Source of the DNA: Ranitomeya imitator
Lineage: Eukaryota
Reading direction: 5' to 3'
Length of the DNA stretch: 64,000 nucleotides
Assembly: GCF_032444005.1 (NCBI RefSeq)
Contig: NC_091290.1
Coordinates: 43,338,001-43,402,000 of the forward strand
The notes beneath the pieces are model-generated. The model saw nothing but the letters and a program-made list of their open reading frames with translations, was not told the DNA's origin and searched no databases. Shown in pieces: positions 1,298-34,448 of the stretch. Made by a program: the position numbers and the translations under genes. Position 1 is the first letter of the stretch; every line of letters begins with the position of its first letter.

Positions 1298-1298
1298 A

Positions 1299-5160: not shown

Positions 5161-6748
5161 CTAGATGATGTCCCGATTCTAACGCATCGGGTATTCTAGA
5201 ATATGTATGTAGCGAAGCGTGGTTCAAATCCCACGCCAATCCGCGGCCGGACTGTGTCTGTCGCTGATTGTTCGCAGCCGGCCGTGCGTGACCAACCAGT
5301 GAAGCCAGGGAAGGCTCCAGGTTTTTGAGGGCCCCAGGTGAAAGAGCCTCACAGCTCACGTAGCATATAACACAGATATAGCATAGCCACGTAGTATATA
5401 GCACAGCCACTTAGTATATTGCACAGCCGTGTAGTATATTGCACAGCCACAAGGTATATAGCACAGCCACGTAGTATATTTCACAGCCTCTTAGTATATT
5501 GCACAGCCACATAGTATATTTCACAGCCACGTAGTATATAGCACAGCCCACGCAGTATATAACACAGCCATGTATTATATAGCACAGCCCACGTAGTATA
5601 TAGCACAGCCCACGCAGTATATAACACAGCCCAAGCAGTATATAACACAGCGCATGTAGTATATAGCACAGCCCACGTAGTATATAACACAGCCCACGTA
5701 GTATATAACACAGCCACGTAGTATATAGCACAGCCACGTAGTATATTGTACAGCGACATAGTATATAACACAGCCCATGTAGTATTTAACACAGACCATG
5801 CAGTATTTAACACAGCCCGTGCAGTATATCACAGAGCCCGCGCAGTATATAACACAGCCCATGTAGTATATAACACAGCCAACGCAGTATATAACACAGC
5901 CCATGCAGTATATAGCACAGCCCATGTAGTATATAACACAGCCACGCAGTATATAGCACAGCCCACGTAGTATATAGCACAGCGATGTAGTATATAACAC
6001 AGTCCATGCAGTATTTAATACAGCCCACACAGTATTTAACACAGCCCATGCAGTATATAACACAGCCCACGTAGTATGTAACACAGCTCACATAGTATAT
6101 AGCAATGTGGGCACCATATTCCTGTTAAAAAAAGAATTAAAATAAAAAGAAGTTATATACTCACCTTCCGGCGGCCCCCGGATTCAGCCCAGGCGTTGAG
6201 CAATGCTCCTCGTGACGCTCCTTTCCCAGTAATGCCTTGCGGCAATAACCTGTGATGATGTAGCGGTCTCGCGAGACTGCTACATCATCTGGGGTCATTG
6301 CCGCAATGCATTCTTGGGACCGGAGCGTCGCGATGAGCGGGAATGGCTGTCGCGGACACCGGAAGGTGAGAATATAACGATTTTTTTAATAATTATTTTA
6401 ACAATATATGTTTTTACTATTGATGCTGCATAGGCAGCATCAATAGTAAAAAGTTGGTCCCACTTACAGGGTTAATGGCAGCGTTAATGGACTGCGTTAC
6501 ACCGCTTTATGCCGCAGTGTAACGCAGTCCATTTAACGGACTGCTAAAATGCTATGTGGGAGGGGAGTATGGAGGGGCACTGGCTGGAGGGGAGTAGGGA
6601 GGGGCCAATTCACAGCTGGACTGTGCCTGTCGCTGATTGGTCACGCCCAGCCGGCCACGACCAATCAGCGACGCGGGATTTCCGTGACAGACAAACAGAC
6701 AGACAGACAAACAGACGGAAGTGGACCTTAGACAATTATATATATCGA
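5161..6748 (-). mobile_element. Non-autonomous Helitron, complete
   Basis: Minus strand: 5'-TC start; 3' hairpin CCCGAT-GCGTTAGA-ATCGGG then CTAG. Inserted between A and T with no TSD. The empty site AAGAAA|TAAC is seen at ~13575. Internal 21-22-bp minisatellite at 5375-6095. Confidence 0.9.
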
Positions 6749-6792
6749 TAACAAAACCCACAAGAAAAGATGGCTCACAGTATAAGTGTAAC

Positions 6793-7760
6793 TGCAGCGC
6801 CCCAGAGACCTGGTCGTTGCAGTAATGTCGCTCTGCCACTAAGGAGGGTGATGTTATGTCTGATTGCACTAAAGGAGTTCATCTGACCAGGTATCACAGC
6901 ACACATTACTCCTCACACTGGTAAAACTAGGGGTTGGATAGGAAGTTAGGCAGAACGCAGCCTGGGAGAGCTCCAGGGAGGATCTGTCAGAACTGGGAAT
7001 CTGGCAGGTACCTAGCCGAAAGGACAGATTGCTACGGAACCGCGCCTGCACTACCTTGCGGCAGTATCTAAAGAAAGGACATGAAACGAAGGATATTGTG
7101 GACAGTGAGAAAAGAGATCAAATACAAAGGAGAGCCAGTAGGAGTCGTGCCCCGAGAATGGCAACATCTTACTGAGGCGCGTAGCCGGTGGCCGGAGCAC
7201 CGGGGAAGTAACAATCTCCACGCATTACTTCAAACAGCGGCAGGACAGTTAATTACAGGTTGGCTGTCTACCATACATCACCTAAGAAGGACATAGGAGG
7301 CAATCGTGGGAGAGGGGCATCGCTAGGGTCCCAGAATAACTCCAGGCCTACCTGTCAGAAAGGTGCATCCTAGCCATATTATCTGGGGGACGGAGAGAGA
7401 GAAAGAACTAGAACGAGAACAGAAGTTGTGAGGACTATCCCGAATGCTCAGCAGGGAAGAACTACAACACACAGGCGCTAGTTGGTAGGCACTGATTTCC
7501 ACCTGCAAAGGGAACTCTGGATGTGCCTTCAGACCGGCCGGTCTCAGACAGCCCTGTTGACAGTGCTTTGGATTGAGGATCCTGAAGCCTTCAGTAAAAG
7601 GTAAAGAGACTGCAACCCTGTGTCCTCGTTATTCCTCGCACCTTGCACCACGCACCATCACCTTTCATTGGACGCCCCTTAGCAGGGTCACGGACCGGGT
7701 CCAGCCACCGTGGTAACCCCGTATTGAGTACCCCGTGGCCCTGTGTCTGGGGGCGCTTCA
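6793..7760 (+). mobile_element. 5' LTR of Gypsy element A
   Basis: Termini TGCAGCGCCCC...GGGGCGCTTCA. Followed by PBS TGGCGTCATGAACAGGAT, one mismatch from the complement of the tRNA-Ser(CGA) 3' end. Homology to the FUT flank stops exactly at 6792. Confidence 0.9.
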
Positions 7761-7827
7761 ACTTGGCGTCATGAACAGGATCTACTTAAGCCTGAAGAAT
7801 CAGGTCATGTGTGCCTTGGAACTGTGA

Positions 7828-9111
7828 TTGAACTGTGACTTATTGCAAAGACTGTGCCACCAAAAATCCGCCATTGCCGCGCCGTGTGGAGCGCGAGGGG
7901 AGGAGCCAGCTGGAAAAGAGCACAGAGCTGAAGAGGGCGGTAAGATGCCGACCCCGGAAGGAGAACCTCAACCCCGACAGGTTAGCAAGGGGGGAAGAAC
8001 GGCCATGTCAGATCCCGGAGGAGCGGAGGCGGCGGCCACAGCTGCAGACTCGGGAGCACTTCTAGATTCCGTGGTAGACGCAGCCACGGGTCTGATCTCA
8101 CCGCCGGATGCCGCGGGGCCTGCCGCTCCCATCAACCAGCCGGATACTGCCGCCGCTACAACAGCCATAATGTCCTTCTCTATGCCGTACCTACCAGGGG
8201 CCGCCTGGCTCCCACGATACTTCGGAGAAGCTCATACGTTAACTGACTTTAAAGAGGGGATTTGTAACCTGCTCGCGTTTTATCCCTTGACGGAGCCTCA
8301 GAAAGTTCATATGATAACCGGCCAACTCTTTGGAGCGGCATTGAGGGAAGTGAAGTCCTGGCCCGCTGCAGACAAGAAAACTGCGCAACAGGTATTTGCA
8401 AAGCTTAAAACCACCTTTGACACCCGCACCGCTACGGAAATTAAATTGACGTTCTATGGGTGCAAGCAGAGCCCGCAGGATAGCTTACAGGACTATGCCC
8501 TTAATCTTCAGGAGGCGCTGCGGGCCATCAAGCAAAGTGACCCAAACAGCATGCAAGATGAAGATAAACTCCTGAAGGAGCGGTTCGTCGAAGGGCTCCT
8601 GTGCAGTAACCAAAGGGCCCAGCTACACTTCCTGGCCATGCAGAACCCAGACCTGACTTTTGCACAATTCAAAGATAAAGCTATCCAGACACTACCAGAG
8701 CGACAGCCCAGCCGCGCCACACTTCCCAGGCGTCAAGCCCTCACGTACCACCAGGAGAAGGCGCCGGACGCACCCGTCTCCGCCGAGGCCGATGCTCAGA
8801 TCCTGGAAGACGACTCCGCTGCAGGACTGCGCCTCCAGGTACAGGAACTGACCAGGAGCGTTGCTGCCCTAGCCCGGACCGTCCAGTCCCTACAGGAGGC
8901 CCCCAAGGAGAAGATCCAGCTGGCTTCCAGACCGGAAGATGTCCTCTGGCAGCGACCAAGGAGAGTTCCATCGACCAGAGGCAGAGACGATGATCATTTT
9001 CATCGGGATGGATGACCTATCTGCCGCCGCTGCCACCAGGTGGGCCATCTTGCAAGGTACTGTCAGTTAAACGAGCAACCCCTGGGGCCAAGGGCCGACC
9101 CCCAGGAGTAG
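7828..9111 (+). pseudogene. Gypsy A gag with premature stop
   Basis: Retrotransposon gag-like ORF. The CCHC knuckle (CRRCHQVGHLARYC) lies in frame just after TGA at 9013-9015, probably CGA>TGA; the next stop is TAG at 9109-9111. Confidence 0.85.
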
Positions 9112-11031
9112 AACGCCAAGGCCCACAATGGAGAGCCAAATACATCGGGGGGCATCCAGTTCTCCCCATCGTGATCGACGGTATCCCCATGAACGCTTTG
9201 CTGGACACTGGTTCCCAGGTGACAACTATGCCTTACATTCTTTATAGACGTTATTGGGAGGACACCGACATTACCCGTGCCCCCGATGATGATTTCACCA
9301 TAATAGCTAGTAATGGCCAGCCGCTGCCGCAAGTGGGGTATAAAGAGGTCACTATTAAGGTGGGGCGGGTAGAATTGGAGGCCCAAGGAATTGTCATTGT
9401 TGATATTGACCGACGCGAATGTAACCCCATGATGACCATCGGTACTAATGTCATAGAAAATTGTCTTGCAGAAGTTATTGTCTTGTTGCAGCAAGTAGCA
9501 GAGGCAGCTGGTTACAGTGAACAACGTGCCTTGCAGAAAGAAATCAGAGCCCTAATGCGGAGACAGCAGGTGGAGCTGACTGGTGGTGAAATTGGCCGGG
9601 TCACAGTGAGTGATTCGAACCCCATTGCAATACCCCCCAGGAGTGAAATGTTAATATGGTGTCGGGCAGCCATAGGCCTCGGGGGTAAAGACTATCAGGC
9701 CCTGGTAGAACCTGTGTATTCGGAGAATAGGCCTACCCTCCTGACAGCCAGAGGGGTGGTTGACGTTCGCAAAGGGAGGGTGCCGGTACGTGTTCTTAAC
9801 TGCGGGGAGGAGGAAGTCCACCTAACCAAATATGTTACACTTGCCAAGCTGTTTACTGTTAATAATAGTGTGATACAGGCACCCGGGCCCTTGGCTCCGT
9901 GCAAGTTGGTGGAGGACAACGGCTCTGCAGAGCAATCAAAGGATTGGTGTCAAGAATTACATGTGGGCACTGATGCTACTCCATCTCACCAGATACAGGG
10001 GGCCTACAGGGTGGTTCACGAGTATGAGCGGGTATTCAGCAAACACCCCCTTGATTTTGGGCGGGTAAAAGGGATTCAACATCACATCCCCACAGGAGAT
10101 CACCCACCCGTAAAAGAAAGATACCGTCCTGTACCCCCAGCTCATTATCAGTGTGCCAAGGACATGTTGTGAGAGATGAAGGAGGCTGGGGTAGTGAGAG
10201 ACAGCTGTAGCCCCTGGGCAGCTCCATTAGTCATCGTTAGGAAGAAAGATGGCACCATGAGGATGTGTGTGAATTATAGGCAATTAAACCGCATTACACA
10301 TAAGGACGCATACCCCCTGCCTAGGATAGAGGAGTCCTTGGCTGCGTTAAAGTCTGCTTATTACTTCTCTACCTTAAGGTACCTTCACACTGAACAATAT
10401 TACAACGATAACGATAGCGATCCGTGACGTTGCAGCGTCCTGGATAGCGATATCGTTGTGTTTGACATGCAGCAACGATCAGGATCCTGCTGTGACATCG
10501 CTGGTCGGAGCTAGAAGGCCAGAACTTTATTTCGTCGCTGGATCAGCCGCTGACATCGCTGAATCGGCTTGTGTGACGCCAATCCAGCGATGTGTTCACT
10601 GGTAACCAGGGTAAACATCGGGTTACTAAGCGCAGGGCTGCGCTTAGTAACCCGATGTTTACCCTGATTACCATTGTAAATGTAAAAAAAAAAAAAAGCA
10701 CATACTCACATTCTGGTGCCTGTCACGTCCCCCGGCGTCCGCTTCCCTGCACTCCTCCTGCATCCTGTGTCAGCGCCGGCCAGCCGTGAAGCAGAGCACA
10801 GCAGTGACGTCACCGCTCTGCTTTACGGCCGGCGCTTAGTAACCCGATGTTTACCCTGGTTACCCGGGGACTTCGGCATCGTTGGTCGCTGGAGAGCTGT
10901 CTGTGTGACAGCTCTCCAGCGACCACACAAGGACTTTCCAACGATTACGGCTAGGTCGTATCGCTGGTCGTGATCGTTGGAAAGTTGCTGAGTGTGACGG
11001 TACCTTTAGATCTCACCAGTGGGTACTGGCA
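9012..11031 (+). pseudogene. Gypsy A pol (protease and start of RT), disrupted
   Basis: Protease motif LLDTGS. In-frame TGA at 10170-10172. RT motifs SPWAAPLVIVRKKDG and YFSTL|DLTSGYWQ are split by a MITE, and the RT is truncated at ~11031. Confidence 0.9.
10377..11005. mobile_element. Harbinger-type MITE inserted in Gypsy A RT
   Basis: TIR AGGTACCTTCACACT / AGTGTGACGGTACCT, TTA TSD (10374-10376 and 11006-11008). Removing it restores TACCTTAGATCTC (TL-DL). Internal ~70-bp hairpin at 10600-10672. Confidence 0.93.
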
Positions 11032-12293: not shown

Positions 12294-13049
12294 GAGTTCT
12301 TCCAAAGTTTCTCTGTAATATAGTCTTCATGAATAGAGTTTTCAAAGGCGAGATAAAACTTGTACTGTGACAACGTTTGTCCATGTTTATTTCTTGGCAG
12401 AGGTAAATCCTGCCTTCCATAAATGTCTACCGATAGAAATTTCTTTAGTTCCTGATAATAGCGTACTCTTTTAGAACCTGGATTCCAGTTACTTATTGCC
12501 CAGGCCACCAGCTTGGTCTTTGGAGGAATTTGGAAGGTATCTTCTTCTTTATTTGGATCTAACCACCATAAGGTGAGAAAATATCTGAGTCAGCTCTGTA
12601 AGACATTGTGAGGTTGATAAGATCATCCATAAAATGCAAATTTGGGCTATGTGATGGAGACTCCAAGTTAAACCAAACCCAGTACTGATTTGGTGGTCTT
12701 GGCATCTGGGGTAATTGTTTTCTGGAATTACAAACATCTCTGTGATGCATAACAATTTCATCTGCGGAAGAATATAATGATCTGTTAGCTGTATAGAAGC
12801 ATCCAGAAATATCAGTGTATGGGGGACATTCATTAAGTGGAAATTTTTCACCAAATGGCCACGTCCAAACAAGGATGATCTTAGTATTGTTAGCTGTTTC
12901 CTGGGGGATACTTGTATATGAAACTTACTGCTAACCAATGAGCGATTTCCATAGTTAAAGAGTGAAAAGTAAATGGTTGAGAGGAACAGTTGTGCAATCA
13001 AAATGATAAAAGCATTCCTGTATGTCAGAGTTTTCCCTTGCTGCTCCAT
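12294..13049 (-). pseudogene. Fucosyltransferase copy 2, pseudogene
   Basis: Highly similar to copies 1 and 3. Two 1-nt deletions (near 12925 and near 12565). Truncated after ITEKLWKN by the Gypsy B LTR; the 3' ~100 codons are absent from the window. Confidence 0.93.
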
Positions 13050-14417
13050 TTGTTTAGGCAGAATCAATGGAAAAAGATTGTATCTGGAGATGAAACTAAG
13101 AAGTATCATACCTGTAGGAGAAAAACAAAATACATTTATGTCACAATAACATTGATGTAAATTATTATTTATTTTTAATTTTAGAATGTTCAGCTTCTTT
13201 TTATACTAGAGATTTATCTCATCTTGATAACCCCCTTTGTGTTTCATTGGTGCATGTATATGTTATATAGGAGGACCCCTGCTCGGGATCCTCTCTTTCA
13301 GCCATAGACCAAAAAGAAGGAAACTGAACATATGGTCAAAGAACAAAGAATATGACAATAGAATTAAGGCTAAAATACCTTTTATTAGTGAGAGTAGGAA
13401 GAAGTAGCGCTACATGCATAAAGAGGAGCCCGCACAAGTTACTAAAAAAGGAAATTAAACATGATTATACATAACAATAAAAATACATTAAAAACCAAAC
13501 CATAAGGTAATGGATGGGAAGATAATATATAAATTTATCAGCATAAATAGCAGAGTAGTTAGCAATTTATAAGAAATAACAAGGCCCACAAGAAAAGATG
13601 GCTCACAGTAGAAGTGTAACCGACAATGACTCACCGTATGTGTGAAATAGGACAGTCATCTGGATGTAAGGGTACCGTCACACAGTGCAATTTTGATCGC
13701 TACGACGGCACGATTTGTGATGTTCGAGCGATATAGGTACGATATCGCAGCGTGTGACACGCTCCTGCGATCAGGGACCCCGCTGTGAATCGTACGTCGT
13801 AGCACATCGTTTGAAACTTTCTTTCGTCGTCTAGTGTCCCGCTGTGGCGGCATGATCGCATGGTGTAACAAAGGTGTGCACGATATTGTATACGATGTAA
13901 AGGGCGGAGGAGCTGGCTACGTAGGAGCGCTAAATTCTCCACCTCCTGTGTGCTGATTGGGCGGTACAATACTGTGCGCTCATTCGACAGACAAAGGACT
14001 ATTGTTCCCAGCGGATAAAACCGGAGCTGTCGAGCGCTCTCTTCATTTCTCTCTGGAGCACGTGCTGGAAACAGAACTCCTAAATTCGCTGGATTCCCTG
14101 GACTTTGATAACTACTATACAGACTTTTACGGCAAGAGGTATGTATAACGCTACAGCGTAGCAGATGTTGCGCTTCAACGGGGATAAACGCTGGAGCGTG
14201 GTCGATTGTTCCTTTATGGAGAGTAGGGTAGAAGGCCAGAGAGCCTCAGGTACACAGCTGTAGCGTGGCCCAATTAATTAATCCTTTTTCAGATCGAGCT
14301 GTAGCATGGTTCACTGCCCCGTTTATGCCAGTAGTAATATAGTTATTAGATCAATGGTCAAAACATTGTTTTGTAAGCACGTGTATTTATTGTACGTTTG
14401 TTTTCTTTTTAGGAACT

Positions 14418-16145
14418 ATGCTCACTTCCGATGAGAGTTCTGTTGTTGCTGCTGCCCTGGTGTTTGAGGCAGCACGTCTCCAAGAGGAGAGACGTCCTAA
14501 ACGAAAACGTCGCATGTGGACCCGGAGCTGGCTGCAGAAAAGATCCACATTGTCACACATGGGTCTCATAAGAGAGTTACGTGATAATAATCCACATGAT
14601 TTCCGAAACTACCTTAGGATGTCAGAGGAATCATTCAAGATAATACTGTCTGCTGTTACGCCACTCATACAAAGGAGTGATACGCCGATGCGTGCAGCCG
14701 TGCCCGTGGATGAAAGGTTGGCGGTGACACTGCGGTTCCTGGCTACAGGAAGGTCTCTTCAGGATTTGCAGTTTTCCGCAGCTGTTTCCAGACCTTTCCT
14801 CAGCGTTGTGATTCCGGAGACATGCGCGGCCATTGTGCAGAGCTTAAGGCATTATATGGAGGTACTACTATTTAATTTGGGCTGCTGTGTTATGTCGATA
14901 TATTATACTAGCTATGTAACCCGTTCTACGGCCTGGCGGCGCACATTTCTATTGGTATCTGTTCTCCATCCTATCATGAGCTGCTCCCATCCTGTGCCCC
15001 CATTCTGACATGTGCTGCTGCGATCCTGCGCCTCCATTCTGACATGTGCTGCTCACATTTTGCGGCTCCATTCTGATATGTGCTGCTCCAATCCTGCGCC
15101 ACCCTTCTTTTATTTGCTGCTCCCAACGTAATTTAATAGGCTATATTATTTCGATATATTGTTTTGCACCCCCTCTCAGTCAGTGAAGCCGTTTCCTAAA
15201 TTGGCTGCCTGCATATTCAGGATTGTTGACTTTGTTATACTAATCAAAACTATGCGTCAATCTCTCTAGGATGTCCACATGAGAGTGTATGTGCACAACA
15301 ATATATTTGACCTAATTTGTACATGTTTCCTTCTCATCCTGCAGTTTCCCAAGTCGGCGGAGGACTGGAAGAAGATTGCTTCCGATTTTGATCAGCTGTG
15401 GCAGTTTCCAAACTGCGGTGGTGCATTAGATGGAAAGCATGTGCGCATCACACAACCAGCCAACTCTGGATCCTTTTTTTTCAACTACAAAGGATATTTC
15501 AGTGTGATCCTCATGGCCCTTGTCAATGCAAACTATGAGTTCGTAGATGTGGATGTTGGCATGAATGGTCGAGTCTCCGACGGTGGAGTTTTTGATCACA
15601 CTTCATTTGGGGAAAGCTTGAGGAACAATCAACTGCAGTTGCCAATAAATGAAGACACAAAAGCAAACCTCAATTTTGTTTTCATCGCTGATGAAGCTTT
15701 CCCTCTTCATCCACATTTGCTGAAGCCATTTGCGCAGAGAACACTCACACCGGAGCGCCGAATCTATAATTACCGGTTGTCGAGGGCCCGTCGTGTAGTT
15801 GAAAATGCCTTTGGGATAATGGCTAATCGGTTTAGAGTGTTCCACACAGCTATCAACTTGAAGCTGCCGTCTATAGACTTTGTGGTTTTGGCATGCTGTG
15901 TGCTCCATAATTTCCTGAGACGTCATGATACGAGCTCCTATTCTCCTCCTTCGTTTATTGATGCAGTGGACCCAAGAACCGGAGATATTGTGCCCGGGGA
16001 ATGGCGTACACAACCTGATAATTTAACAGCTCTTCAAGCACTCGGATCTGGCAGACAGGCAGACGATGCAAGGGACTGTCGAGAAAAATACTGTCAGTAC
16101 TTTAATGGTTCTGGAGCTGTACCCTGGCAGGATCACGCCGTATAA
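14418..16145 (+). CDS. Harbinger DDE transposase (HARBI1-like), 2 exons, 414 aa, open
   Basis: Exon 1 14418-14861 (GAG|GT), exon 2 15345-16145 (CAG|TTT), phase 0. Motifs GALDGKHV, FIADEAFPL and RRVVENAFG give a complete D-D-E triad; N-terminal HTH-like region RLAVTLRFLATG. Confidence 0.92.
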
Positions 16146-16606
16146 AAAAAAAATTTTTTTTTGCTTTGCTGTTTACTCAACAATATGTATGTTATGCTTT
16201 CGTGTCCACAATGTAAATTTGCGAGTAGGTCACTGTCTTTTGTGTAATAAAATTAAATTGTATTTATTTCTCCCATTATTGTTGATTGTTCATTTTAGAT
16301 AGTACGTTATAGCGGTCGGTCTATATTGCATTCCAAAGTCAAATGGCGACTTCCTTCCATTCCAAGCTCTGCCATGCACACAAACAATGGTGTACCCACA
16401 CAGAATCGTGTTTTCAATCATATAAACCTCTGTAAATTACTTAAATGTGATGAGATGCCTAAAAAATGGTGTTGTAAACCCTTATAGCTCCATAAATATT
16501 AAATAATGAGAAATTTTTTTTTTCTAAGGTAAGGTAACTATTTCTTTATATGTAATAATCTAACTCCAAAACATAACATAACAAAAAAAAAACAATAAAA
16601 AACAAA

Positions 16607-18307
16607 TTATCTTCTGCCACGGTCTAACAGGTGTCGCAGCGTCACACCCTGCTGCTCTACTTGAGCCTGGAGGAGCGCTGCTGGCTGCTGCAGGAGCGCT
16701 GCTGTACGCTCCAGGCGTAGTTGTCTGGCCAGGAGCTCTGTCACGGTGGGCAGTTCTGTGGATAGAAGAGGTTGGAGAACTGATGGTGATTCCGCTGAAA
16801 ATACATATTGACCTCTGTTGCTGGACCAAATTGAGTGTGTTGTAAATTTCTATTTGGTCCGGGCACACAGGGCATTTTGTTTTTAAATTAAATTTTACAG
16901 TTTCAGTTGTCAATTGTGACATTCCACCGAGATATCCACTCGTATTATCTTAATACTTACGGAGAAGGGACGCCGGTTCTTCGTTGCCAGAACCACTACT
17001 GCTTATTTCCCATCCATGACATCTGGCCACTGCTGCAACAGCTAAAAGGAAATAATAACAGATCTGGTTAACTATGGAACACTCCGTTGCAAAGCGCTCG
17101 CTGTTTTGGTCTCTTACGTATGGTAGCTTCTGGGGAGAAGACCGCCGACCCGGGGGTGGAAAATGAGGGCCGGAAGGGAGGTGTTGAGGGTGGTGTTGGG
17201 GTGCGAGGCTGCATGGTCAATAAAGATGTAGAGGTCCCGGGCTCTGGGCTGCTGCTGGTGGCGGATGAAGGAGAGCTTGTCTCAATGAGAGGTGCCTGTT
17301 GCCGACGCCTTCTCTCTACACATAAATGAAACAAACAAAATGTTTAGACATTCCTATACTGTATGTTCTAAACCAAGTGCAGAGCAAAGGGAATCATTGC
17401 AACCAATACGGTTCCTGCTTTAATTAGTCAAAAAAGTCTAATGAACGCTGTGTTCTGATCGTGTTTTCCAGCAGCATTTGGAGAAGTTGTAACAGAGAAG
17501 CTTGTCTTTTATATGTGTAGTACTGTGTGTGCCCCATATTGTGTGCTCCGTACGATGTGTACGTGGTTCTGTGTGCGGCACGGTGTGTACGTCGTTGTGT
17601 GCGCGTCGCGCTGTGTGTGCTACATATTATGTGCGGCACGGTGTGTATGCCGCAGTACTAGAAGAGCATCACGGCTGTGCGCGTCTACTGATTAGCTGCC
17701 ATTATTTCCCCTCCGGGCACTGTTCGCGCAGGATAATGTATGCAATATGTACGCTACACTGTTATGTCACCTATGCTATAATTACATTTCTATGAGTGAT
17801 GGTACACTTACGTGAGGTCCCGGGCTGTGGCCTGATGCTGTTGGTGGATGAAGGACAACTGGCAGCAATGGCAGGTCTGTGTTGCCGTCGCCTTCTCTCT
17901 ACACATAAATGAAAGAAAAGCAATGTTTTAAAAACAAAGAACAGGGATTCCAGAGCCCCCCCCAAAAAAAATAGCGCGCAGGGTGGCCAACCTCCTCGTA
18001 AAAGCGTGCATCGCCCAATTCCCCCATACTGGTACTTGCCTCGCCTTGTCTCCGCACGCAACTCAGCCAGAAGGTGTGGATTTTTGTGGCGGAGGTCGGC
18101 CCATTTCTTACGCAACTGCTGCGCACTCCGGCGGACGCCAAACCTCCTATCCAGCATTTTCCCAATGCGACGCAGCACCTCCTGCTTATGTTGGTTCGGG
18201 TGTGCTGGGATAGTCTTCTGGCATTCATAATCAAGGGCATCCATGCGATGTACCAAAAACCGGAGCTCGGTGTGCCCCAAAGGGGCAGATCTCTGTCTTC
18301 CAGCCAT
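16607..18307 (-). CDS. Element-borne Myb/SANT-like (trihelix) protein A with C-terminal coiled coil, 5 exons, 273 aa
   Basis: Exons 18307-18040, 17898-17812, 17315-17118, 17041-16961 and 16794-16607, all phase-1 junctions, no stops. Domain ...KQEVLRRIGKML..GVRRSAQQLRKKWADLR; last exon ELLARQLRLERTAALLQQ... Confidence 0.8.
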
Positions 18308-18600
18308 TACAGATAAAAAGACGTTATAAAGCAGCACCTAACCACGCCCAGAGGAAGTCCTTAACTATGCATTTCTCCCGCGCGATCCGCATCGCTATAG
18401 CGTTGCCGTTTATGGACAGCGTCACTTTTGTGACGTCTGAGAGTGACAGAAGGAACGCACATAGTAAATGACGCTCGAACGATGTAGATATTACGCCGGT
18501 GCGGCACGTAATGTGCGCTCGTGGTATATGACGGCGTGATGACGTTACAACGTTCCTGCGTGCCTGCGCTACCTTGCTTTGCTTCCCTGACATCCTTAAA
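18308..18600. promoter_or_regulatory. Probable bidirectional promoter between Myb genes A and B
   Basis: 293 bp separate the divergent ATGs. CpG-rich, with several TGACG half-sites. Function is inferred. Confidence 0.55.
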
Positions 18601-20099
18601 ATGGCTGCCAGGCGACGTGATTCTCCTATGGGTGTCCCAGAGCTAAAGTTCATGATTAGCACTATGGATCGGATGCGTTACGAAACCACAGGGCTGGTGC
18701 TGCACCGCAACCAGCACAAGGATGAAGTCGTACGTGTGGTGTCTGAGGGCCTCAGGAAGCAGTTTGGGATAACCAGAAGTAAGGCCCAGATTGTGAAGAA
18801 ATGGGGCGATCTTAAATCCAAAAGCCCAGCGCGCCTGCAGGAGCTTCGCCGCGAGATCCGCAGTGGTGAGTACGCAGGTACCCAAAAGTATTGCACGCCG
18901 AAGGGTTAATTGGGTGTGTATGTGGTGTGTATGTGGCCCTGCTATGGTGCAATAATGAAAGGTGCAGAGCACTTTTTTGCCATGCTATGGTGCAATAATG
19001 AATGGTGCAGAGCACTATGTGGCCCTGCTATGGTGCAATAATGAACGGTGCAGAGCACTATGTGGCTCTGCTGTGTTTCCACAATGAACGGTGCAGAGCA
19101 CTATGTGGCTCTGCTGTGTTTCCACAATGAACGGTGCAGAGCACTAGGTGGCCCTGCTGTGGTGCAACAATGAACGGTGCACAGCACTATGTGGCCCTGC
19201 TGTGGTGCAATAATGAATGGTGCAGAGCACTTTTTTGCCATGCTATGGTGCAATAATGAATGGTGCAGAGCACTATGTGGCCCTGCTATGGTGCTATGCT
19301 AACAGACCTTTTTTTTTTTTTTTTCCTTCACAGAGGCAAAGAGACAGCGTCGCCGCCACGAGGCATCCCACACCACCACAGATATTGCTGTGCCCTCCGG
19401 GTCAACGGCTCAACAACCCAGTAGGTTCACCCAATAATGTGATTATGATTTGTTGGAAGGTGCCCTCCCCCCCCCCCCCCCACCTGCAGTCACTGTTACC
19501 ATTTATGTAAAAAAAAATTTTTTATTTTTTCCCTTCACAGAGGCAAAGACACAGCGCCGCCGTCGAGTGTACCAGGCCTTTGACACGGACTCAGATCCAG
19601 ACTTGCCCTCCGTGCCTACAGATCCTAGTAGGTTCCCACAATAATGTGATTTGAATCTGGTGGCAGGTCCCCTATTCCCCCCCCCACCTGCAGTGACTGT
19701 TGCCATTTATGTAAAAAAAATTTTTTTTTTTTTTCCCCTCACAGAGGCAACGACACAGCGTCGCAGCCACGAGGCTTCCCACCCCGCCTCACATGTCCGT
19801 GTGCCCTCTGGGTCAACAGCTGAACAACCTAGTAGGTTCCCACAATAAGGCCGGCGTCACACACAGCGTAAAACAATACGGTCCGTATATTACGGCCGTA
19901 ATACACTGAAAAGTCCCGAAAAAAGTGGTCCGTAGCTCCTCCGTAGGCAGGGTGTGTCAGCGTTTTTTGCGCATGGCATCCTCCGTATGTAATCCGTATG
20001 GCATCCGTACTGCGTGGTTTTCTCGCAGGCTAGCAAAACCAACATACCGCTATAGAAGTGATCCATGTGTCCCAAAAAGAAAAGAAAATATATATATAC

Positions 20100-20159
<60 letters not shown>

Positions 20160-23100
20160 AGTAGACACATATATTAGAGAGAAAAGCCGGTAATTCAGTG
20201 CGGTGTACAGTAAAATCACACTGACAGCTTACAGTAGAATAGGTAGAATAAATGTGTACACATAGAATAGGTATATATATATATATATGTCAGTGAGACA
20301 CATATATGTATATATATTAATATTTATTCCAGCGCTAGACAGCTTGAAAGCCGGTAATTCAATTACCGGCTTTTTCCTTCTCCTTCCTAAAACCCGACAT
20401 GATTTGAGACATGGTTTACATACAGTAAACCATGTCTTCTCTCCATTTTTTTTGCAGATTCCACACTACTAATGTCAGTAGTGTGTATCTGCAAAATTTG
20501 GCCGTTCTAGCTCTTAAAATAAAGGGTTAAATGGCGGAAAAAATTGGCGTGGGCTCCCGCGCAATTTTCTCCGCCAGAGTAGTAAAGCCAGTGACTGAGG
20601 GCAGATATTAATAGCCTGGAGAGGGTCCATGGTTATTGGCCCCCCCCTGGCTAAAAATATCTGCCCCCAGCCACCCCAGAAAAGGCACATCTGGAAGATG
20701 CGCCTATTCTGGCACTTGGCCACTCTCTTCCCATTCCCGTGTAGCGGTGGGATATGGGGTAATGAAGGGTTAATGCCACCTTGCTATTGTAAGGGGACAT
20801 TAAGCCTAATTAATAATGGAGAGGCGTCAATTATGACACCTATCCATTATTAATCCAATTGTAGTGAAGGGTTAAATAAAACACAAACACATTATTTAAA
20901 ATTATTTTAATGAAATAAAAACAATGGGTGTTGCAGTATTTTATTCAACGCCCAATCCAGTCACTGAAGACCCTCGTTCTGTGAGTAAAAAAACATAATA
21001 AACCAACAATATACTTACCCTCCGCAGATCTGTAACGTCCAACGATGTAAATCCTTCTGAAGGGGTTAAAACATTTTGCAGCAATGCAGAAAGCCAGGGA
21101 GCTTTCTAGGTAATTTCCCACGATCTATGAACAGCCAGCAGAGGGCGCCTCACCGCAAATAAAGCTAAATATAGATCATTGATCTATTTTTAGCCTCATT
21201 CCCTGGGGTTTTGCAGCGAGGAGCAGCCTGCATTAGCACAGCTCCTTGCTGCAAAATGTTTTAACCCCTTCAGAAGGGTTTACATCGTTGGACGTTACAG
21301 ATCTGCGGAGGGTAAGTATATTGTTGGTTTATTATGTTTTTTTACTCACAGAACGAGGGTCTTCAGTGACTGGATTGGGCGTTGAATAAAATACTGCAAC
21401 ACCCATTGTTTTTATTTCATTAAAATAATTTTAAATAATGTGTTTGTGTTTTATTTAACCCTTCACTACAATTGGATTAATAATGGATAGGTGTCATAAT
21501 TGACGCCTCTCCATTATTAATTAGGCTTAATGTCACCTTACAATAGCAAGGTGGCATTAACCCTTCATTACCCCATATCCCACCGCTACACGGGAATGGG
21601 AAGAGAGTGGCCAAGTGCCAGAATAGGCGCATCTTCCAGATGTGCCTTTTCTGGGGTGGCTGGGGGCAGATATTTTTAGCCAGGGGGGGCCAATAACCAT
21701 GGACCCTCTCCAGGCTCTTAATATCTGCCCTCAGTCACTGGCTTTACTACTCTGGCGGAGAAAATTGCGCGGGAGCCCACGCCAATTTTTTCCGCCATTT
21801 AACCCTTTATTTTAAGAGCTAGAACGGCCAAATTTTGCAGATACACACTACTGACATTAGTAGTGTGGAATCTGCAAAAAAAATGGAGAGAAGACATGGT
21901 TTACTGTATGTAAACCATGTCTCAAATCATGTCGGGTTTTAGGAAGGAGAAAGAAAAAGCCGGTAATTGAATTACCGGCTTTCAAGCTGTATAGCGCTGG
22001 AATAAATATTAATATATATACATATATGTGTCTCACTGACATATATATATATATACCTATTCTATGTGTACACATTTATTCTACCTATTCTACTGTAAGC
22101 TGTCAGTGTGATTTTACTGTACACCGCACTGAATTACCGGCTTTTCTCTCTAACAGCGCTGCGTATTTCTCGCAAGTCACACTGCTTGTCCGTGTGTAAT
22201 CCGTATTTTTCACGCTTCCATAGACTTTCATTGGCGTATTTCTTGCGCAGTACGGTGACAAACGCAGCATGCTGCGATTTTGTACGGCCGTAGAAAGCCG
22301 TATAATACTGATCAGTAAAATACGGCAAATAGGAGCAGGGGCATAGAGAATAATTGTGCCGTATTTTTTGCGAGTTTTACGGACGTAGATTCTGCGCTCT
22401 TACGTCCGTAAAACTCGCATGTGTGACGCCGGCCTAATGTGTTCAGGATTTGGTGGCAGGTCCCCTCTTTCCCCCCCCCCCCTCCCCCGGCAGCAAGTGT
22501 TGCCATATATGCTAACAGACCTTTTTTTTTTTTTTCCATTCACAGAGGCAAAGACACAGCACCGCAGCCACGAGGCTTCCCACCCCGCCTCACATGTCCG
22601 TGTGCCCTCTGGGTCAACAGCTGAACAACCTAGTAGGTTCCCACAATAATGTGTTCAGGATTTGGTGGCAGGTCCCCTCTTTTTCCCCCCCCCCCCCGGC
22701 AGCAAGTGTTGCCATATATGCCAACAGACCTTTTTTTTTTTTTTTTCCCTTCACAGAGGCAAAGACACAGCGCCGCAGCCACGAGGCTTCCCACCCCGCC
22801 TCACATGTCCGTGTGCCCTCTTGGTCAACAGCTGAACAACCTAGTAGGTTCCCACAATAATGTGTTCAGGATTTGGTGGCAGGTCCCCTCTTTCCCCCCC
22901 CCCCTCCCCCGGCAGCAAGTGTTGCCATATATGCTAACAGACCTTTTTTTTTTTTTTCCCTTCACAGAGGCAAAGACACAGCGCCGCAGCCACGAGGCTT
23001 CCCACCCCGCCTCACATGTCCTTGTGCCCTCTGGGTCAACAGCTGAACAACCTAGTAGGTTCCCACAATAATGTATTCAGGATTTGGTGGCAGGTCCCCT

Positions 23101-23790
23101 CTTTTCCCCCCCCCTCCCCCGGCAGCAAGTGTTGCCATATATGCTAACAGACCTTTTTTTTTTTCCCTTCACAGAGGCAAAGACACAGCGCCGCAGCCAC
23201 AAGGCTTCCCACCCCGCCTCACATGTCCGTGTGCCCTCTGGGTCAACAGCTGAACAACCTAGTAGGTTCCCACAATAATGTGTTCAGGATTTGGTGGCAG
23301 GTCCCCTCTTTTCCCCCCCCCCCTCCCACGGCAGCAAGTGTTGCCATATATGCCAAAAGACCTTTTTTTTTTTTCCTTCACAGAGGCAAAGAGACAGCGC
23401 CACCGCCGACAGCACGAGGCATTCGACACCGACACAGATCCCGAAGTGCCCTCCGTGCCTCAACATCCTAGTAGGTTCCCACAATAAAGTTATTTTGATT
23501 TTGTTGCAGGCCCACTCTTTCACCCCCAACCCAAACCCCCCCCCCCCCCCCAACTCAGTTTTGCTTACTTTTTTTGTATTTATTTTACTTCACAGAAGCA
23601 AAGACACATCGGGAGACTACTGTGTTATTAATGTTATGTTTTTTGACCCACAGCTGTCGTCACTGTCAACAAGGAGGATATTGAAGCCGGCATAGAAAAG
23701 TTACTCCACACTATGGCACATATTCAGGAGCAGCACAATGTGGCAATGGAGGAGCTGCAGAAGCTGCGGGACATGTGCCAGCAGTTGTAG
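18601..23790 (+). CDS. Element-borne Myb/SANT-like protein B with repeat linker and C-terminal coiled coil, 10 exons, up to 365 aa
   Basis: Exon 1 18601-18865 (G|GTGAGT). Eight 87-nt exons: 19334-19420, 19541-19627, 19745-19831, 22546-22632, 22757-22843, 22968-23054, 23175-23261, 23384-23470. Last exon 23654-23790 (EDIEAGIEKLLHTMAHIQEQHNVAMEELQKLRDMCQQL*); AATAAA at ~23821. Confidence 0.78.
18930..19294. repeat. 43-bp minisatellite in intron 1 of Myb gene B
   Basis: About 8 copies of CTATGTGGCCCTGCTATGGTGCAATAATGAACGGTGCAGAGCA and variants. Confidence 0.9.
19849..22434. mobile_element. Non-autonomous Harbinger-type element with ~900-bp internal inverted repeat, nested in an intron of Myb gene B
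   Basis: TIR GGCCGGCGTCACAC, TAA TSD (19846-19848 and 22435-22437). Arms ~20175-21086 and ~21246-22152 are near-identical reverse complements. Confidence 0.95.
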
Positions 23791-24031
23791 GCGGGCCAAT
23801 AATCCATATTTTGTTGTTACAATAAAAATATTTTGTTAAACTATCATTCCATTTTTTTTGTATTACTTAACTGTACATGAATTTGTTACGTTAATTTGTG
23901 CCCTCATACAGTGCTGTGATTGAGACACACCAATCAAAAAGTAGTGATAGAATTTATAATAAAAGCTTTTATTTGAAACATTATTTTAACAAGACAATAA
24001 AATAAAAAGGAATGTAAAAGAAGCTAGGAAA

Positions 24032-25455
24032 TCACAAATTATGATACGACGATTGTTCCCGCTGAAAACTTTGGTGCCTGATGGGCGAAGCCATATCTAA
24101 AGGTATTGGCGTGTAGGAGTTATTAGGGGGTGGATGGCCGAAGTGGGAAACGTGAGCATTGTGTCGCATCGATGTCTGACACTGTGACCAACCATTGTAA
24201 TTTGATGGCTCTGTCCGCTGTATTGGCCGGGAAGAGACCAAACAAGTGTTCTTGTCCAAATCGCCATCAGTACCCTTGTTTACTGCTTCCAGAATCAGAC
24301 GCTCTGCTAGTATTCTTTGGTTGTCGTCCATTTTTGCCAGTTTGTCAACCACATAGTGTCCAAACCCCTCTAACGCAGGGCTAACATTTCTTGTCAACAC
24401 CTTCTTTGCAAGGCTCAATAGTTCATTTGAGGCGTCTGAGGTGGCTTTCCGTTTTCTTGGACCTTGCCTCGATTGAGTCCTGGCAGGTGCAGCCTCCACT
24501 AAATCTGTTGTCGTGCAGTCCTGTGAACAGTCCAGTGTACTCTCCTGCGCACTGTCATCCTGGGGGGGGGGGAAAAAAAAAACAAGTTATGAACCCGGCA
24601 ACAAAAAGTAGTACCACCATAACCGCATCCAAACTATATATTCGTAGTAGGTAACAAAAAGATTATAATATATTTGATGCTTAGTAATATTCTTTAACCC
24701 TCCCTTTTATTGAATACTTTGAACTACACTGTTCTGACTGTTAGGTGAACCTGACCAATATTTTATAGTCTAAATAGTCTCAACAAGAGTACATCGGCAG
24801 CTTGAAGCGATACTATTTTCTATATTGCTTAGATGGTATGGTTTACATATATCGCCATTTCATACATATTAAGTTCCCCATATAATACTTGACTGCGACA
24901 GGGTTACTTATGTGTACATGTTTTTGTAACAACTTCAAACTGATGTGATAATCAGAAGTATAAAACCTAAAATGCAGAGAAACATTATGTAATTATAGGA
25001 CACATTGGTGAACTTTCGTCCAAAGAGCTACTTACTTGTTGCCCTTGTGACTCCTGCTCGGCGTGGTTCTCCGAAACTATTGGTTCCACAGGTGACAACA
25101 ACCGAAGACACGTGGAAGTCCGTGGCACCTCTTGGTCCCTCAGAAAATTAAGATGCTCAAAATACCAAAGTTTTGGCACATAAACTTCTTCAGTGGAAGC
25201 TCCGGACCTTGTAGTCTGAAGAACCTTGTTCAGCTCCTTCCTCCACACCGTGCGGAGCGCCTGGATTTTCTTTTTAATAACTGCTTCGTTAGCTGCCTCA
25301 TCTGGTGCATGACGATTGTAAAGCTCAATGAGCTGTAAGTAACCCTCCCTCCTCTTTTCCCTGTTACAATACTCAGGAGACTTGATTTTCCTGAGGCAGG
25401 GAAAAGACTGATAAATCTCGATGAAATCCCTGATGAACTCCACACGATTAGACAT
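24032..25455 (-). CDS. MADF-domain protein, the usual Harbinger partner, 2 exons, 315 aa
   Basis: Exon 1 25455-25036 (CAA|GTAAGT), exon 2 24559-24032. MADF motifs FIEIYQSFPCLRKIK and KKKIQALRTVWRKE...YVPKLWYFEHLNFL. BESS-like FGHYVVDKLAKMDDNQRILAERLI. Confidence 0.88.
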
Positions 25456-25539
25456 CTGAAAAATAATTATAAAAAAAAATTACATGGTTGACAAAGAGTC
25501 CTATTAACAATACTTTTGACAGTGTGCCAAACGCTTAAC

Positions 25540-26480
25540 AACAGCAGCCACACAAAGCGCTCATGCCTACCATCGCTTCTTCCATCTGCCACGCCATAGG
25601 CCACCATAACCCAAAACAGTGTACCGCCCACTTCCCTACAGCAGCCACACAAAGCGCTCATGGTGACCATCCATTGTACCATCTGCCACGCTCTAGCTCA
25701 ACAGACACAACCGGTCATAAGCAGTCACAACAGCGTACCATCCGCATCGCTTCAGCGGCGGAACGAAGCGGTAATGCCGACCAAACTGCGTTCCATCTAC
25801 CACGCTGTAGCCCACCAGTCACGACCAGTCACAACCAGTCACGACAGCGTACCATCCGCATCGCTTCTTCCATCTGCTCCGCCATAGGCCACTACCGCCC
25901 GCTTCCCTACAGCAGCCACACAAAGCGCTCATGGTGACCATCCATTGTACCATCTGCCACGCTCTAGCTCAACAGACACAACCGGTCATAAGCAGTCACA
26001 ACAGCGTACCATCCGCATCGCTTCAGCGGCGGAACGAAGCGGTCATGCCGACCAAACTGCGTTCCATCTACCACGCTGTAGCCCACCAGTCACGACCAGT
26101 CACAACCAGTCACAACAGCGTACCATCCGCATCGCTTCTTCCATCTGCTGCGCCATAGGCCACTACTGCCCGCTTCCCTACAGCAGCCACACAAAGCGCT
26201 CATGGTGACCATCCATTGTACCATCTGCCACGCTCTAGCTCAACAGACACAACCGGTCATAAGCAGTCACAACAGCGTACCATCCGCATCGCTTCAGCGG
26301 CGGAATGAAGCGGTCATGCCGAACAAACTGAGTTACATCTACCACGCTGTAGCCCACCAGTCACAACCAAGCACAACAGCGTACCATCTGCCACATTGTA
26401 GCCCTCCAGTCACAACAGTGTACCATCCGCTTCGCTTCAGCGGTGGAACGAAGCACTCATGCCGTCCATACAGCGTTCCA
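25540..26480. repeat. ~271-bp tandem repeat upstream of the MADF gene
   Basis: CAGCAGCCACACAAAGCGCTCATGG recurs at ~25640, 25911 and 26181, with degenerate partial units on both sides. Confidence 0.9.
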
Positions 26481-27451
26481 TCCACCACGCCCAAGCGGTT
26501 TACATACCTCGAAGCAGCGGTGCAAAGCGTGGTATATTCAGCGAAGTAGAAAATTCCAATGTCCAGGTCCACCAAGTGTCCAAGTACGAAGTGAAGAAAG
26601 GAAATTTTGAAAGCAGTGAGGTAGCATTGGGAACAATAGCGCTCAGGTGACAAATTTTCCAACCAATTGTGTGCACAGAACCTTTGGCCTATCAGCACAC
26701 TAGCTAGTAGCACAACACGCCCCTAGTGAACAACGTCACGCACAGATTATGCAAAATTTGCTCTGAATCGTCGTGTGTGACACGACCGTACGACTGTCCC
26801 ATACGACTTCTACATCGCAAATACGTCATGAATTTATCGCTTCAGCGCCGTGCATCGTGTTGTGTGACCGCAGTCTACGATGTTTGAAACGATAATTAAG
26901 CGACGATGTAACGTCACAAATCGTGCCGTCGTAGCGATCAAAATTGCACTGTGTGACGGTACCCTAAGAGTATCAGAGGAAACAGTAACTGTGCTATATA
27001 CAATGAAGGAAAATAGACACCACAGGGATGTAAATTCATGTAAAGGTACAAACAAAGGTCACTATAAGGTTGTGTATTTTGTCCATAGTGTATAGAAGCA
27101 GGAGATGCAAGACCTACAAAAAAAGTCATTATAATTGCAATATATTGATAGGGCAAGTAGGTAGAAGGAGGAGATGCACAACCTGTGGGGTACAACTATC
27201 CAGAGAAGGATGGAATACTGCGAATATGGGCACAATAGATTACCTGTATGGTTCATGGTCCTGGTACGGCGCACACCCCGATGCATGTTTTGGAACGTGT
27301 CCTCTTTATGCATGTAGTGCCACTAATAATGGTATTTTAGCCTTAATTCTATTGTCCTACTCTTTGTTGTTTCACCATATGTTCAGTTACCCTCATTTTG
27401 GTCTTCACAATTCCCAAATGGTCTTCTATTCTTCCCTGTACAGCAGATATA

Positions 27452-33108: not shown

Positions 33109-34164
33109 TCATTTGTACCATTCTCCAAGTTTTGAAATAGTTTTGTTTGGCGGAGCCTCTTTTAGTGCTTTACACACCCTGCAGTAATGAGTCTGCCAAG
33201 GACCACTTCTACAGGGATGAAATCTGGATCTCCATGAAAAATACTGTTGGTAAGCTTTCTCATCACCGTCTAACTTCAAGATATATTTAGCGAGCTCTTC
33301 AGCTGTGGAGAAGTCATCTACGTGGATAAAAGAGTCTTTTGGAATATAGCGTTCATAATTTTTCCGAGTAGGACCAAGAACAACTGGTACGCATCCATAT
33401 ATCAATGCGTTCTTCCAAAGTTTCTCTGTAATATAGTCTTCATGAATAGAGTTTTCAAAGGCGAGATAAAACTTGTACTGTGCCAACGTTTGTTCAAGTT
33501 TATTTCTTGGCAGAGGTACATGCTGCCTTCCATAAATGTCTACAGATAGAAATTTCTTTAGTTCCTGATAATAGCGTACTCTTTTAGAACGTGGGTTCCA
33601 GTTACTTATTGCCCAGGCCACCAGCTTGGTCTTTGGAGGAATTTGGAAGGTATCTTCTTCTTTATTTGGCTCTAACCAACCATAAGGTGAGAAAATATGT
33701 GAGTCAGCTCTGTAAGACATTGTGATGTTGATAAGATCATCCATAAAATGCAAATTTGGGCTATGTGATGGAGACTCCAAGTTAAACCAAACCCAGTACT
33801 GATTTGGTGGTCTTGGCATCTGGGGTAATTGTTCTCTGTAATGACAAACATCTCTGTGATGCATAACAATTGCATCTGCGGAAGAATATAATGATCTGTT
33901 AGCTGTATAAAAGCATCCAGAAAAATCAATGAATGGGGGACATTTATTAAGTGTAAATACATCACCAAATGGCCACGTCCAAAGAAGGATGATCTTAGTA
34001 TTGTTAGCTGTTTCCTGGGGGATACTTGTATATGAAAACTTACTGCTAACCCACGAGCGATTTCCATAGTTAAAAAGTGAAAAGAAAATGGTTGAGAGTA
34101 ACAGTTGTGCAATCAAAATGATAAAAGCATTCCTGTATGTCAGAGTTTTCCCTTGCTGCTCCAT
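33109..34164 (-). CDS. Alpha-1,3-fucosyltransferase (GT10, FUT3/5/6-like), copy 3, 351 aa
   Basis: Same motifs as copy 1; 35 of 351 residues differ. Acceptor at 34227-34226. Confidence 0.95.
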   Translation of the reverse strand: MEQQGKTLTYRNAFIILIAQLLLSTIFFSLFNYGNRSWVSSKFSYTSIPQETANNTKIILLWTWPFGDVFTLNKCPPFIDFSGCFYTANRSLYSSADAIVMHHRDVCHYREQLPQMPRPPNQYWVWFNLESPSHSPNLHFMDDLINITMSYRADSHIFSPYGWLEPNKEEDTFQIPPKTKLVAWAISNWNPRSKRVRYYQELKKFLSVDIYGRQHVPLPRNKLEQTLAQYKFYLAFENSIHEDYITEKLWKNALIYGCVPVVLGPTRKNYERYIPKDSFIHVDDFSTAEELAKYILKLDGDEKAYQQYFSWRSRFHPCRSGPWQTHYCRVCKALKEAPPNKTISKLGEWYK

Positions 34165-34354
34165 TTATTTAGGCAGAATCAATGGAAATGCTTGTATCTG
34201 GAGATGAAACTAACAAGTATCATACCTGTCGGAGAAACACAAAATACATTTATGTCACAAAAACATTGATGTAAATTATTATATATATTTAATTTTAGAA
34301 GGTTCAGCTTCTTTTTATACTAGAGATTTATCTCATCTTGATAACCCCCTTTGT

Positions 34355-34448
34355 AGAAGGACGTAGATCTGGGGATTTATTATGATGGAATATAGGCTGA
34401 ACTGGATGGACAAATGTCTTTTTTCGGCCTTACTAACTATGTTACTAT
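34355..34448 (+). mobile_element. CR1-type LINE 3' tail fragment
   Basis: Absent from the homologous flanks of copies 1 and 2. Ends GGCTGAACTGGATGGACAAATGTCTTTTTTCGGCCTTACTAACTATGTTACTAT. Confidence 0.7.

Follow-up and report, generated by a model that had tools for sequence, protein, structure and literature searches.

Within a 64,000-nt stretch of the Ranitomeya imitator genome (contig NC_091290.1; hereafter the window, to whose positions all coordinates refer) lies a 13.3 kb transposon of the PIF/Harbinger superfamily, at 13670-26964, which carries four genes: a transposase, two Myb/SANT-like genes that we name MybA and MybB, and a MADF gene. We judge it probable that this is a recently inserted, complete and autonomous element of a dendrobatoid lineage whose standard coding set is above two genes. 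In the literature searched, PIF/Harbinger transposons are consistently described as two-gene elements (PMC13668399; PMC9710019). An earlier note on this DNA, made from its letters alone (the sequence-only reading), knew of no report of such a four-gene architecture; no description of a three- or four-gene Harbinger element was found in the literature searched, the Repbase and Dfam consensuses not having been compared.

Element boundaries and insertion site

PIF/Harbinger transposons are recognised by a 3-bp target-site duplication (TSD), usually TAA or TTA, and by terminal inverted repeats (TIRs) that start with GG(G/C). The element in the window is a genuine PIF/Harbinger transposon with exact ends, combining a DDE_Tnp_4 transposase, a TAA TSD, GGGTACCGTCACACA TIRs and the Myb/SANT/MADF type of partner gene, of which it has three where a single one is expected. 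Its ends and target site are as follows:

13667-13669, no strand: left TSD, TAA; the empty paralog carries a single TAA
13670-13724, plus strand: left TIR, beginning GGGTACCGTCACACA; perfect over 51 nt, with one mismatch in 55 nt
26910-26964, minus strand: right TIR, in inverted-repeat pairing with 13670-13724
26965-26967, no strand: right TSD, TAA, matching the left TSD
34871-34894, plus strand: empty target site in another host-repeat copy, with a single TAA, uninterrupted

The two TIRs pair over 55-56 nt, 51 perfect nt being followed by one T/C mismatch, and a 30-nt terminal probe finds these two sites only in the window, against 0 expected. The window holds three paralogous host-repeat copies, one of which received the insertion, and the empty paralogous site near 34.8 kb reads ...GGGATGTAAGAGTATCAGAGG... 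straight through, with a single TAA. Pairing, probe and paralog thus bear out the sequence-only reading in its claim of a Harbinger element with 51-bp perfect TIRs, a TAA TSD and an empty site, while its four genes in the arrangement transposase>, <MybA, MybB>, <MADF are sustained by Pfam domains and by models with GT-AG introns, all four of which are open. Open frames in so young a copy are not in themselves evidence of selection.

The host-repeat copies occupy 3884-4988, 12296-13404 and 33409-34614 and are 95-97% identical. The copy at 12296-13669/26968-27404 contains a 77-nt, 90% inverted repeat (13306-13382 versus 27328-27404).

The transposase

14418-14861, plus strand: transposase exon 1, with the ATG at 14418 and a splice joint in an RNA contig
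15345-16145, plus strand: transposase exon 2, with the DDE_Tnp_4 domain and the stop (Pfam, protein alignment)

The transposase model is a protein of 414 aa with a GT-AG intron at 14862-15344, and a contig from an RNA library joins 14859/61 to 15343/45 across this GT..AG intron. The DDE_Tnp_4 domain (PF13359), in the open reading frame (ORF) at 15270-16142 of the plus strand, scores 111.5 bits against a cutoff of 24.8 bits (E=4e-32), and the conserved motifs at the putative DDE positions are ALDGKH (around residue 175), IADEAF (around 262) and VENAFG (around 300). Across all 414 aa the protein is 95.7% identical to the annotated R. imitator protein P0072, and the 90% clusters of near-identical annotated R. 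imitator transposases hold 8 and 74 members; the closest transposases of Anomaloglossus are 69-71% identical to that of the window. The empty site, the near-perfect TIRs, the spliced transposase RNA and the many near-identical annotated transposases suggest, if indirectly, that the element is mobile.

Proteins from Anthonomus, Acanthoscelides, Photinus, Palaemon and Penaeus (beetle, firefly and shrimp) are 53-60% identical to the transposase, which is about as close as the Xenopus or Hyperolius copies. This patchy frog/arthropod distribution might stem from horizontal transfer.

Three partner genes in one element

MybA is encoded on the minus strand and predicted to be 244 aa long. From start to stop, its exons, and after them two further features, are:

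18036-18307, minus strand: MybA exon 1, Myb/SANT-like (trihelix) domain, with the ATG at 18307
17118-17311, minus strand: MybA exon 2, basic cluster and Ser/Pro-rich linker, in an exon order that agrees with P0001
16961-17041, minus strand: MybA exon 3, GWEISSS motif, from a GT-AG model
16607-16794, minus strand: MybA exon 4, ending in a TAA stop, with the conserved C-terminal helix, whose homologue in P0001 is likewise predicted
17812-17894, minus strand: truncated copy of MybA exon 2 in intron 1, in frame only as a replacement for exon 2
18308-18600, no strand: 293-bp head-to-head spacer between the start codons of MybA and MybB

The spacer is a putative bidirectional promoter. MybB, on the plus strand, consists of a first exon, up to eight 87-nt cassette exons of phase 1-1, and a last exon; it amounts to 365 aa with all cassettes, and the frame is kept by any subset of them.

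18601-18865, plus strand: MybB exon 1, paralogous Myb/SANT-like domain, 95% identical to XP_069617890.1
19334-19831, plus strand: three tandem units of ~205 bp, with cassettes at 19334-19420, 19541-19627 and 19745-19831
22546-23470, plus strand: five units of 211 bp, with cassettes at 22546-22632, 22757-22843, 22968-23054, 23175-23261 and 23384-23470
23654-23790, plus strand: MybB last exon, C-terminal helix and TAG stop, with AATAAA at 23821-23826

The two genes are 46% identical to each other over 92 aa. The exon order of MybA is matched in R. variabilis by LOC143787373 (P0001), whose domain is 71% identical, and the structure of MybB, including spliced 29-aa cassettes, is matched in R. imitator by XP_069617890.1 (P0008). 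Contigs from RNA libraries cover 18090-18449, over MybA exon 1, and 18623-18779, over MybB exon 1, at about 3x depth.

Beside the 95% identity of exon 1, the terminal exon of P0008 is 52% identical to that of MybB in the window, and its penultimate exon is without counterpart there. In R. variabilis, P0002 fuses a MybB-type domain to MybA-type downstream exons. Judged by such gene models, members of the family show modular mixing of their parts.

The third partner gene, MADF, encodes a protein of 314 aa on the minus strand:

25036-25455, minus strand: MADF exon 1, MADF_DNA_bdg domain, with the ATG at 25455 and an AG acceptor immediately before it
24035-24559, minus strand: MADF exon 2, C-terminal half and TGA stop, from a GT-AG model

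In the ORF at 24988-25479 of the minus strand, PF10545 is matched over profile positions 1-84 of 84 with 51.7 bits against a 22-bit cutoff (E=1.1e-13). The 174-aa MADF exon 2 gave no Pfam hit at E<=1, and thus no BESS motif; we accordingly class the gene as MADF alone. MADF is the second type of Harbinger partner, known from insects and nematodes.

Family and fold of the Myb proteins

A HMMER scan of 1.84 billion representatives yielded 52 relatives of the Myb proteins, and those with a named source all come from frogs (Ranitomeya, Phyllobates, Anomaloglossus, Xenopus, Hyperolius, Bufo, Lithobates and Engystomops). Nearly all are annotated as 'uncharacterized' or hypothetical. P0008 goes in RefSeq under the name 'serine/arginine repetitive matrix protein 2-like', evidently due to its amplified basic, Ser-rich 29-aa cassettes.

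Myb_DNA-bind_5 or Myb_DNA-bind_4 is matched by 19 of 28 family members (E<=0.01, best 1.8e-7); MybB matches Myb_DNA-bind_4 only, at 16.7 bits against a cutoff of 27. AlphaFold models the MybA domain with four helices, at a pLDDT (predicted local distance difference test) of 84.3. The top matches of this model among the Swiss-Prot models of the AlphaFold database (AFDB) are FSBP, MSANTD4, MSANTD3, NAIF1, MYPOP and TSNARE1, aligned over residues 1-90 with template modelling (TM) scores of 0.62-0.67 and probabilities of 0.96-1.0; the E-values are weak, at 0.07-0.3 for FSBP, MSANTD4, MSANTD3 and NAIF1. In the PDB the closest folds are the GT-1 trihelix and Zeste, and a sequence search of the PDB with the Myb-family profile gave no significant match.

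MybA and MybB share a common plan, in which an N-terminal trihelix Myb/SANT-like domain is followed by a disordered, basic, Ser/Pro-rich linker and a C-terminal helix. The full-length model of P0001 likewise shows the domain, a disordered linker and a single C-terminal helix of 38 residues, and the motif of this helix is conserved across the dendrobatoid clade and in MybA, and is looser in MybB. A 28-sequence family alignment has 8 positions that are invariant or nearly so; MybA and MybB retain every one of them despite their 55% divergence, which suggests constraint on both. NAIF1 and the MSANTD genes are reported to have been domesticated from Harbinger Myb-like proteins (PMC9392472; PMC9710019). 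By modelled fold, MybA and MybB are of this classical vertebrate partner type (NAIF1/MSANTD/FSBP), so that any of the partner genes in the element might be counted as 'extra'.

Recurrence of the layout and its origin

The strongest evidence on the layout comes from the public gene annotations of other neighbourhoods; to judge from these, further copies, and also elements of another frog family, have transposase>, Myb>, <MADF in this order. At another R. imitator locus, a DDE_Tnp_4 gene (+) is followed, after a gap of 2.67 kb, by a MybB homolog (+) and a MADF gene (-, 314 aa). The corresponding gap in the window, from the transposase stop to the MybB ATG, is 2.46 kb and contains MybA; the locus matches the window in order, orientation, spacing and MADF length. 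Anomaloglossus baeobatrachus belongs to the sister family. One of its loci has a DDE_Tnp_4 gene of 418 aa (+), a Myb gene of 247 aa (+) and a MADF gene of 304 aa (-), and a second has a DDE_Tnp_4 gene of 415 aa (+) and a Myb gene of 230 aa (+). Parts of the layout reappear in a second R. imitator family, with convergent Myb (+) and MADF (-) genes, and in R. variabilis, where MADF lies 3.07 kb upstream of a MybA-like gene on the same strand; this distance is 3.14 kb in the window when a nested miniature inverted-repeat transposable element (MITE) is left aside.

The Myb domains of Anomaloglossus and of the window are 45-52% identical, and this value, with transposase identities of about 70%, indicates that the layout predates substantial divergence of the element lineages. 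Recurrence in R. imitator and in two diverged Anomaloglossus elements, with partial matches in R. variabilis and R. imitator, upholds the proposal of the sequence-only reading that the layout is maintained. Its idea of an accessory module of two additional nuclear proteins stood in part: the pair is inside the element and maintained, but its members are of the classical partner type and not exotic.

One might object that the structure is a one-off, due to nested insertion, to capture of a pair of host genes or to faulty assembly, with frames open from youth. The middle of the element is rich in secondary events, among them a nested MITE, tandem arrays and a palindrome of 100% identity, and the near-perfect TIRs imply little time for decay. 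Against this, the gene order is repeated at other loci and in other species, and the exon structures of MybA and MybB are matched in independently annotated proteins, with 71% and 95% identity. Furthermore, the Myb region is multi-copy, with several variant contigs in one of two organisms whose sequencing runs were searched (organism A) and Myb-region contigs also in the other (organism B). Nor is the pair bracketed by termini of its own: in agreement with the sequence-only reading, a search for inverted repeats between the intergenic regions flanking it found none beyond 10 nt of poly-A. We regard a one-off structure as hardly credible, and as largely refuted.

In a maximum-likelihood (ML) tree, the MybA, MybB and single-Myb types form one dendrobatoid clade (99/94), the three-way split within it being unresolved; in this clade MybA and MybB stand as old paralogs. 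As diverged relatives have three genes, the four are most simply explained by a later inverted duplication, and it is likely that the ancestral element had three genes and that the fourth arose by inverted Myb duplication. In the scenario that we propose, the Myb gene of a three-gene ancestor would have been duplicated in inverted orientation in a Ranitomeya sub-lineage, with MybA as the new inverted copy and MybB in the ancestral position. The copy in the window would later have grown to 13.3 kb through the nested MITE, minisatellites and amplification of the 87-nt MybB cassette.

A distant Myb homolog of Xenopus laevis, P0016, about 30% identical, lies in a transposon of more than 18.4 kb (L001:1-18463) with the terminus GGGGGGAATTCACAAAAGTGTCGGG, of which there are at least 6 copies (L001-L006), 99.8% identical over more than 18.4 kb. 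Beside it lies a MITE with GGGGGGAATTCACAAAAGTGTCGGG ends and a 3-bp ATT duplication (L006:18665-19131). No transposase or MADF gene was found in the examined part of the P0016 loci L001-L006, and a three-gene layout common to all anurans, which we had considered, is unsupported by that part. The Engystomops contig L007 and the Hyperolius and Phyllobates Myb loci had no informative neighbours.

Copy number, MITEs and secondary events

Copy number was gauged from word depth in Logan contigs of four runs, among them DNA runs of organisms A and B. In each of the four, the terminal ~330 bp of the element exceed the interior in depth by about 100x, and in the DNA run of organism A they reach about 600,000; a very large MITE population, or MITE swarm, therefore shares the ends of the element. 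Within 13650-13999, loose ends at 13714, 13735, 13829 and 13898 mark points where MITE variants diverge. In the DNA run of organism A, word depth is about 400-5,000 in the Myb region and about 4,000-10,000 in the transposase. Contigs diverging at 16385 were considered as candidate two-gene copies and set aside: their continuation is not in the window, and the position coincides with an unrelated high-copy repeat.

The secondary features inside the element are:

14964-15125, no strand: 34-bp minisatellite in the transposase intron, a genome-wide high-copy motif seen as a word-depth spike
16275-16449, no strand: fragment of an unrelated high-copy repeat, seen as a word-depth spike, between the convergent 3' ends of the transposase and MybA
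18930-19294, no strand: 43-bp minisatellite in MybB intron 1, from tandem-repeat analysis
19849-22434, no strand: nested Harbinger-type MITE of 2,586 bp in a MybB intron, with TIRs and a TAA duplication
25519-26502, no strand: 271-bp tandem array, itself containing 88-nt sub-repeats, in the interval from the MADF start to the right end

The nested MITE has 15-bp TIRs, GGCCGGCGTCACACA, and a TAA duplication at 19846-48 and 22435-37, a site at which the neighbouring, uninterrupted repeat units carry TAA once. Its interior is a palindrome whose arms of ~960 bp, with 100% identity over 444 nt, enclose a loop of 161 nt; this may be a genuine foldback element or a product of misassembly. The termini GGCCGGCGTCACACA resemble those of the Harbinger element, GGGTACCGTCACACA.

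Elsewhere in the window there are a degenerate telomere-like (GGGTTA/GGGCTA) array at 47684-48111 and 20-21-bp minisatellite arrays at 5347-6125 and 40483-41484.

Proposed roles of the partners

By analogy with Harbinger3_DR and Ping/Pong, the transposase would cut and paste the element at TAA. The Myb coiled-coil proteins would, again by analogy, bind subterminal motifs, for which the repeated GTGTGAC is a candidate, and bring the transposase to the ends and to the nucleus; they may self-associate or pair, as homo- or heterodimers, via the C-terminal helix. The MADF protein would add a second DNA-binding specificity, directed at other subterminal repeats or at chromatin targeting. We entertain tentatively, and with some doubt, a multi-partner machinery in which the Myb coiled-coil and MADF proteins, historically alternative partner types, split end recognition, nuclear import and transposase recruitment between them, and in which, in the four-gene sub-lineage, a MybA/MybB heterodimer, formed via the C-terminal helix, could distinguish or bridge the two ends.

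A number of points weigh against the reading of an autonomous element with a standard set of more than two genes. The roles given to all of the proteins are drawn by analogy, and the repeated subterminal motif is weak, since the 430 bp next to either end together hold 5 copies of GTCACAC. MybA exon 1 falls just short of Myb_DNA-bind_5 (21.6 bits against a 21.7-bit cutoff, E=2e-4), and the Foldseek E-values of its domain are weak, at 0.07-0.5. The recurrence of the layout comes from gene annotations and not from the DNA of other copies; at the matching R. imitator locus, MybA is not annotated and its presence in the gap is inferred from spacing. The spliced frames of the sequence-only reading are confirmed by RNA for the transposase intron, but no MybA or MybB splice joints were found in two RNA libraries with about 3x coverage, in which some DNA is possible. 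Finally, depth in the Myb region is 2-10x below that of the transposase, so many related copies apparently lack the Myb pair or have a more diverged version of it.

This difference in depth bears on an alternative in which MADF is the true partner and the Myb genes are maintained passengers or regulators, acting as a repressor or an anti-silencing or chromatin factor, or simply hitchhiking. To judge from the difference, copies without Myb genes probably exist, and they may be mobile. MADF is indeed the partner in nematode and insect PIF elements (PMC13668399; PMC9710019), and Harbinger-derived proteins of Arabidopsis function in anti-silencing (PMC5339849). On the other hand, a Myb domain of the NAIF1/MSANTD type is the essential partner in Harbinger3_DR (PMC9710019), and a Myb gene has been kept between transposase and MADF where the transposases have diverged by about 30%. 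We consider passenger Myb genes unlikely.

Conversely, MADF could be an acquired passenger, with the duplicated Myb coiled-coil protein as the functional Harbinger partner. The genes that MybA resembles in structure are exactly those that were domesticated from Myb-like proteins of vertebrate Harbinger elements, and papers on teleost and vertebrate Harbinger elements (including PMC9392472) give Myb-like partners and make no mention of MADF. MADF nevertheless holds the same position and orientation in the R. imitator and Anomaloglossus elements, and that of the window is intact with a strong Pfam score, so that a passenger MADF seems to us decidedly improbable.

Comparison with known systems

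With the reconstructed zebrafish element Harbinger3_DR, and with its domesticated relatives HARBI1/NAIF1, the element shares a DDE_Tnp_4-type transposase, TIRs, a 3-bp TAA-type duplication and a separate Myb protein. In Harbinger3_DR, the transposase depends for its import into the nucleus on the Myb/SANT/trihelix protein, which also binds subterminal motifs (PMC9710019). Harbinger3_DR has two genes, to which the element in the window adds MADF and an inverted second Myb paralog. The MybA domain is structurally similar to NAIF1, whereas MybA and MybB are less than 25% identical to it and their roles here are putative. The same N-terminal trihelix Myb/SANT-like fold is found in MSANTD3, MSANTD4, FSBP, MYPOP and TSNARE1; these, however, are single-copy host genes, whereas MybA and MybB are multi-copy and reside in a mobile element.

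Drosophila PIF, Caenorhabditis Turmoil1/2 and Harbinger-1M_cIno likewise combine a transposase with MADF, TIRs and a 3-bp TSD (PMC13668399; PMC9710019). In the insect and nematode PIF elements MADF is the sole partner and typically stands head-to-head with the transposase, whereas here it occupies the far end of the element, in convergent orientation to a Myb coiled-coil gene, and is accompanied by two further DNA-binding genes. Rice Ping/Pong (ORF1 and TPase) and mPing show a comparable need for two components and termini in common with a far more abundant MITE (PMC2836001), but Ping/Pong is of a plant lineage and has a single Myb-like ORF1, without MADF or a duplicated partner.

For annotation, RefSeq lists these transposon genes as 'uncharacterized' or, once, as 'serine/arginine repetitive matrix protein 2-like'. 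To our knowledge, PIF/Harbinger is the only cut-and-paste superfamily that requires a second, separately encoded DNA-binding protein, and the reason for this is partly understood, from one fish and one rice element. With both partner types in one frog element, it could be shown which partner does what, and the diverged Myb pair in one branch could serve to test partner number against activity, MITE mobilisation and host silencing. If the multi-partner reading is true, this lineage would offer a natural system for studying the job of the obligatory second protein and the origin of pairs of the HARBI1-NAIF1 type.

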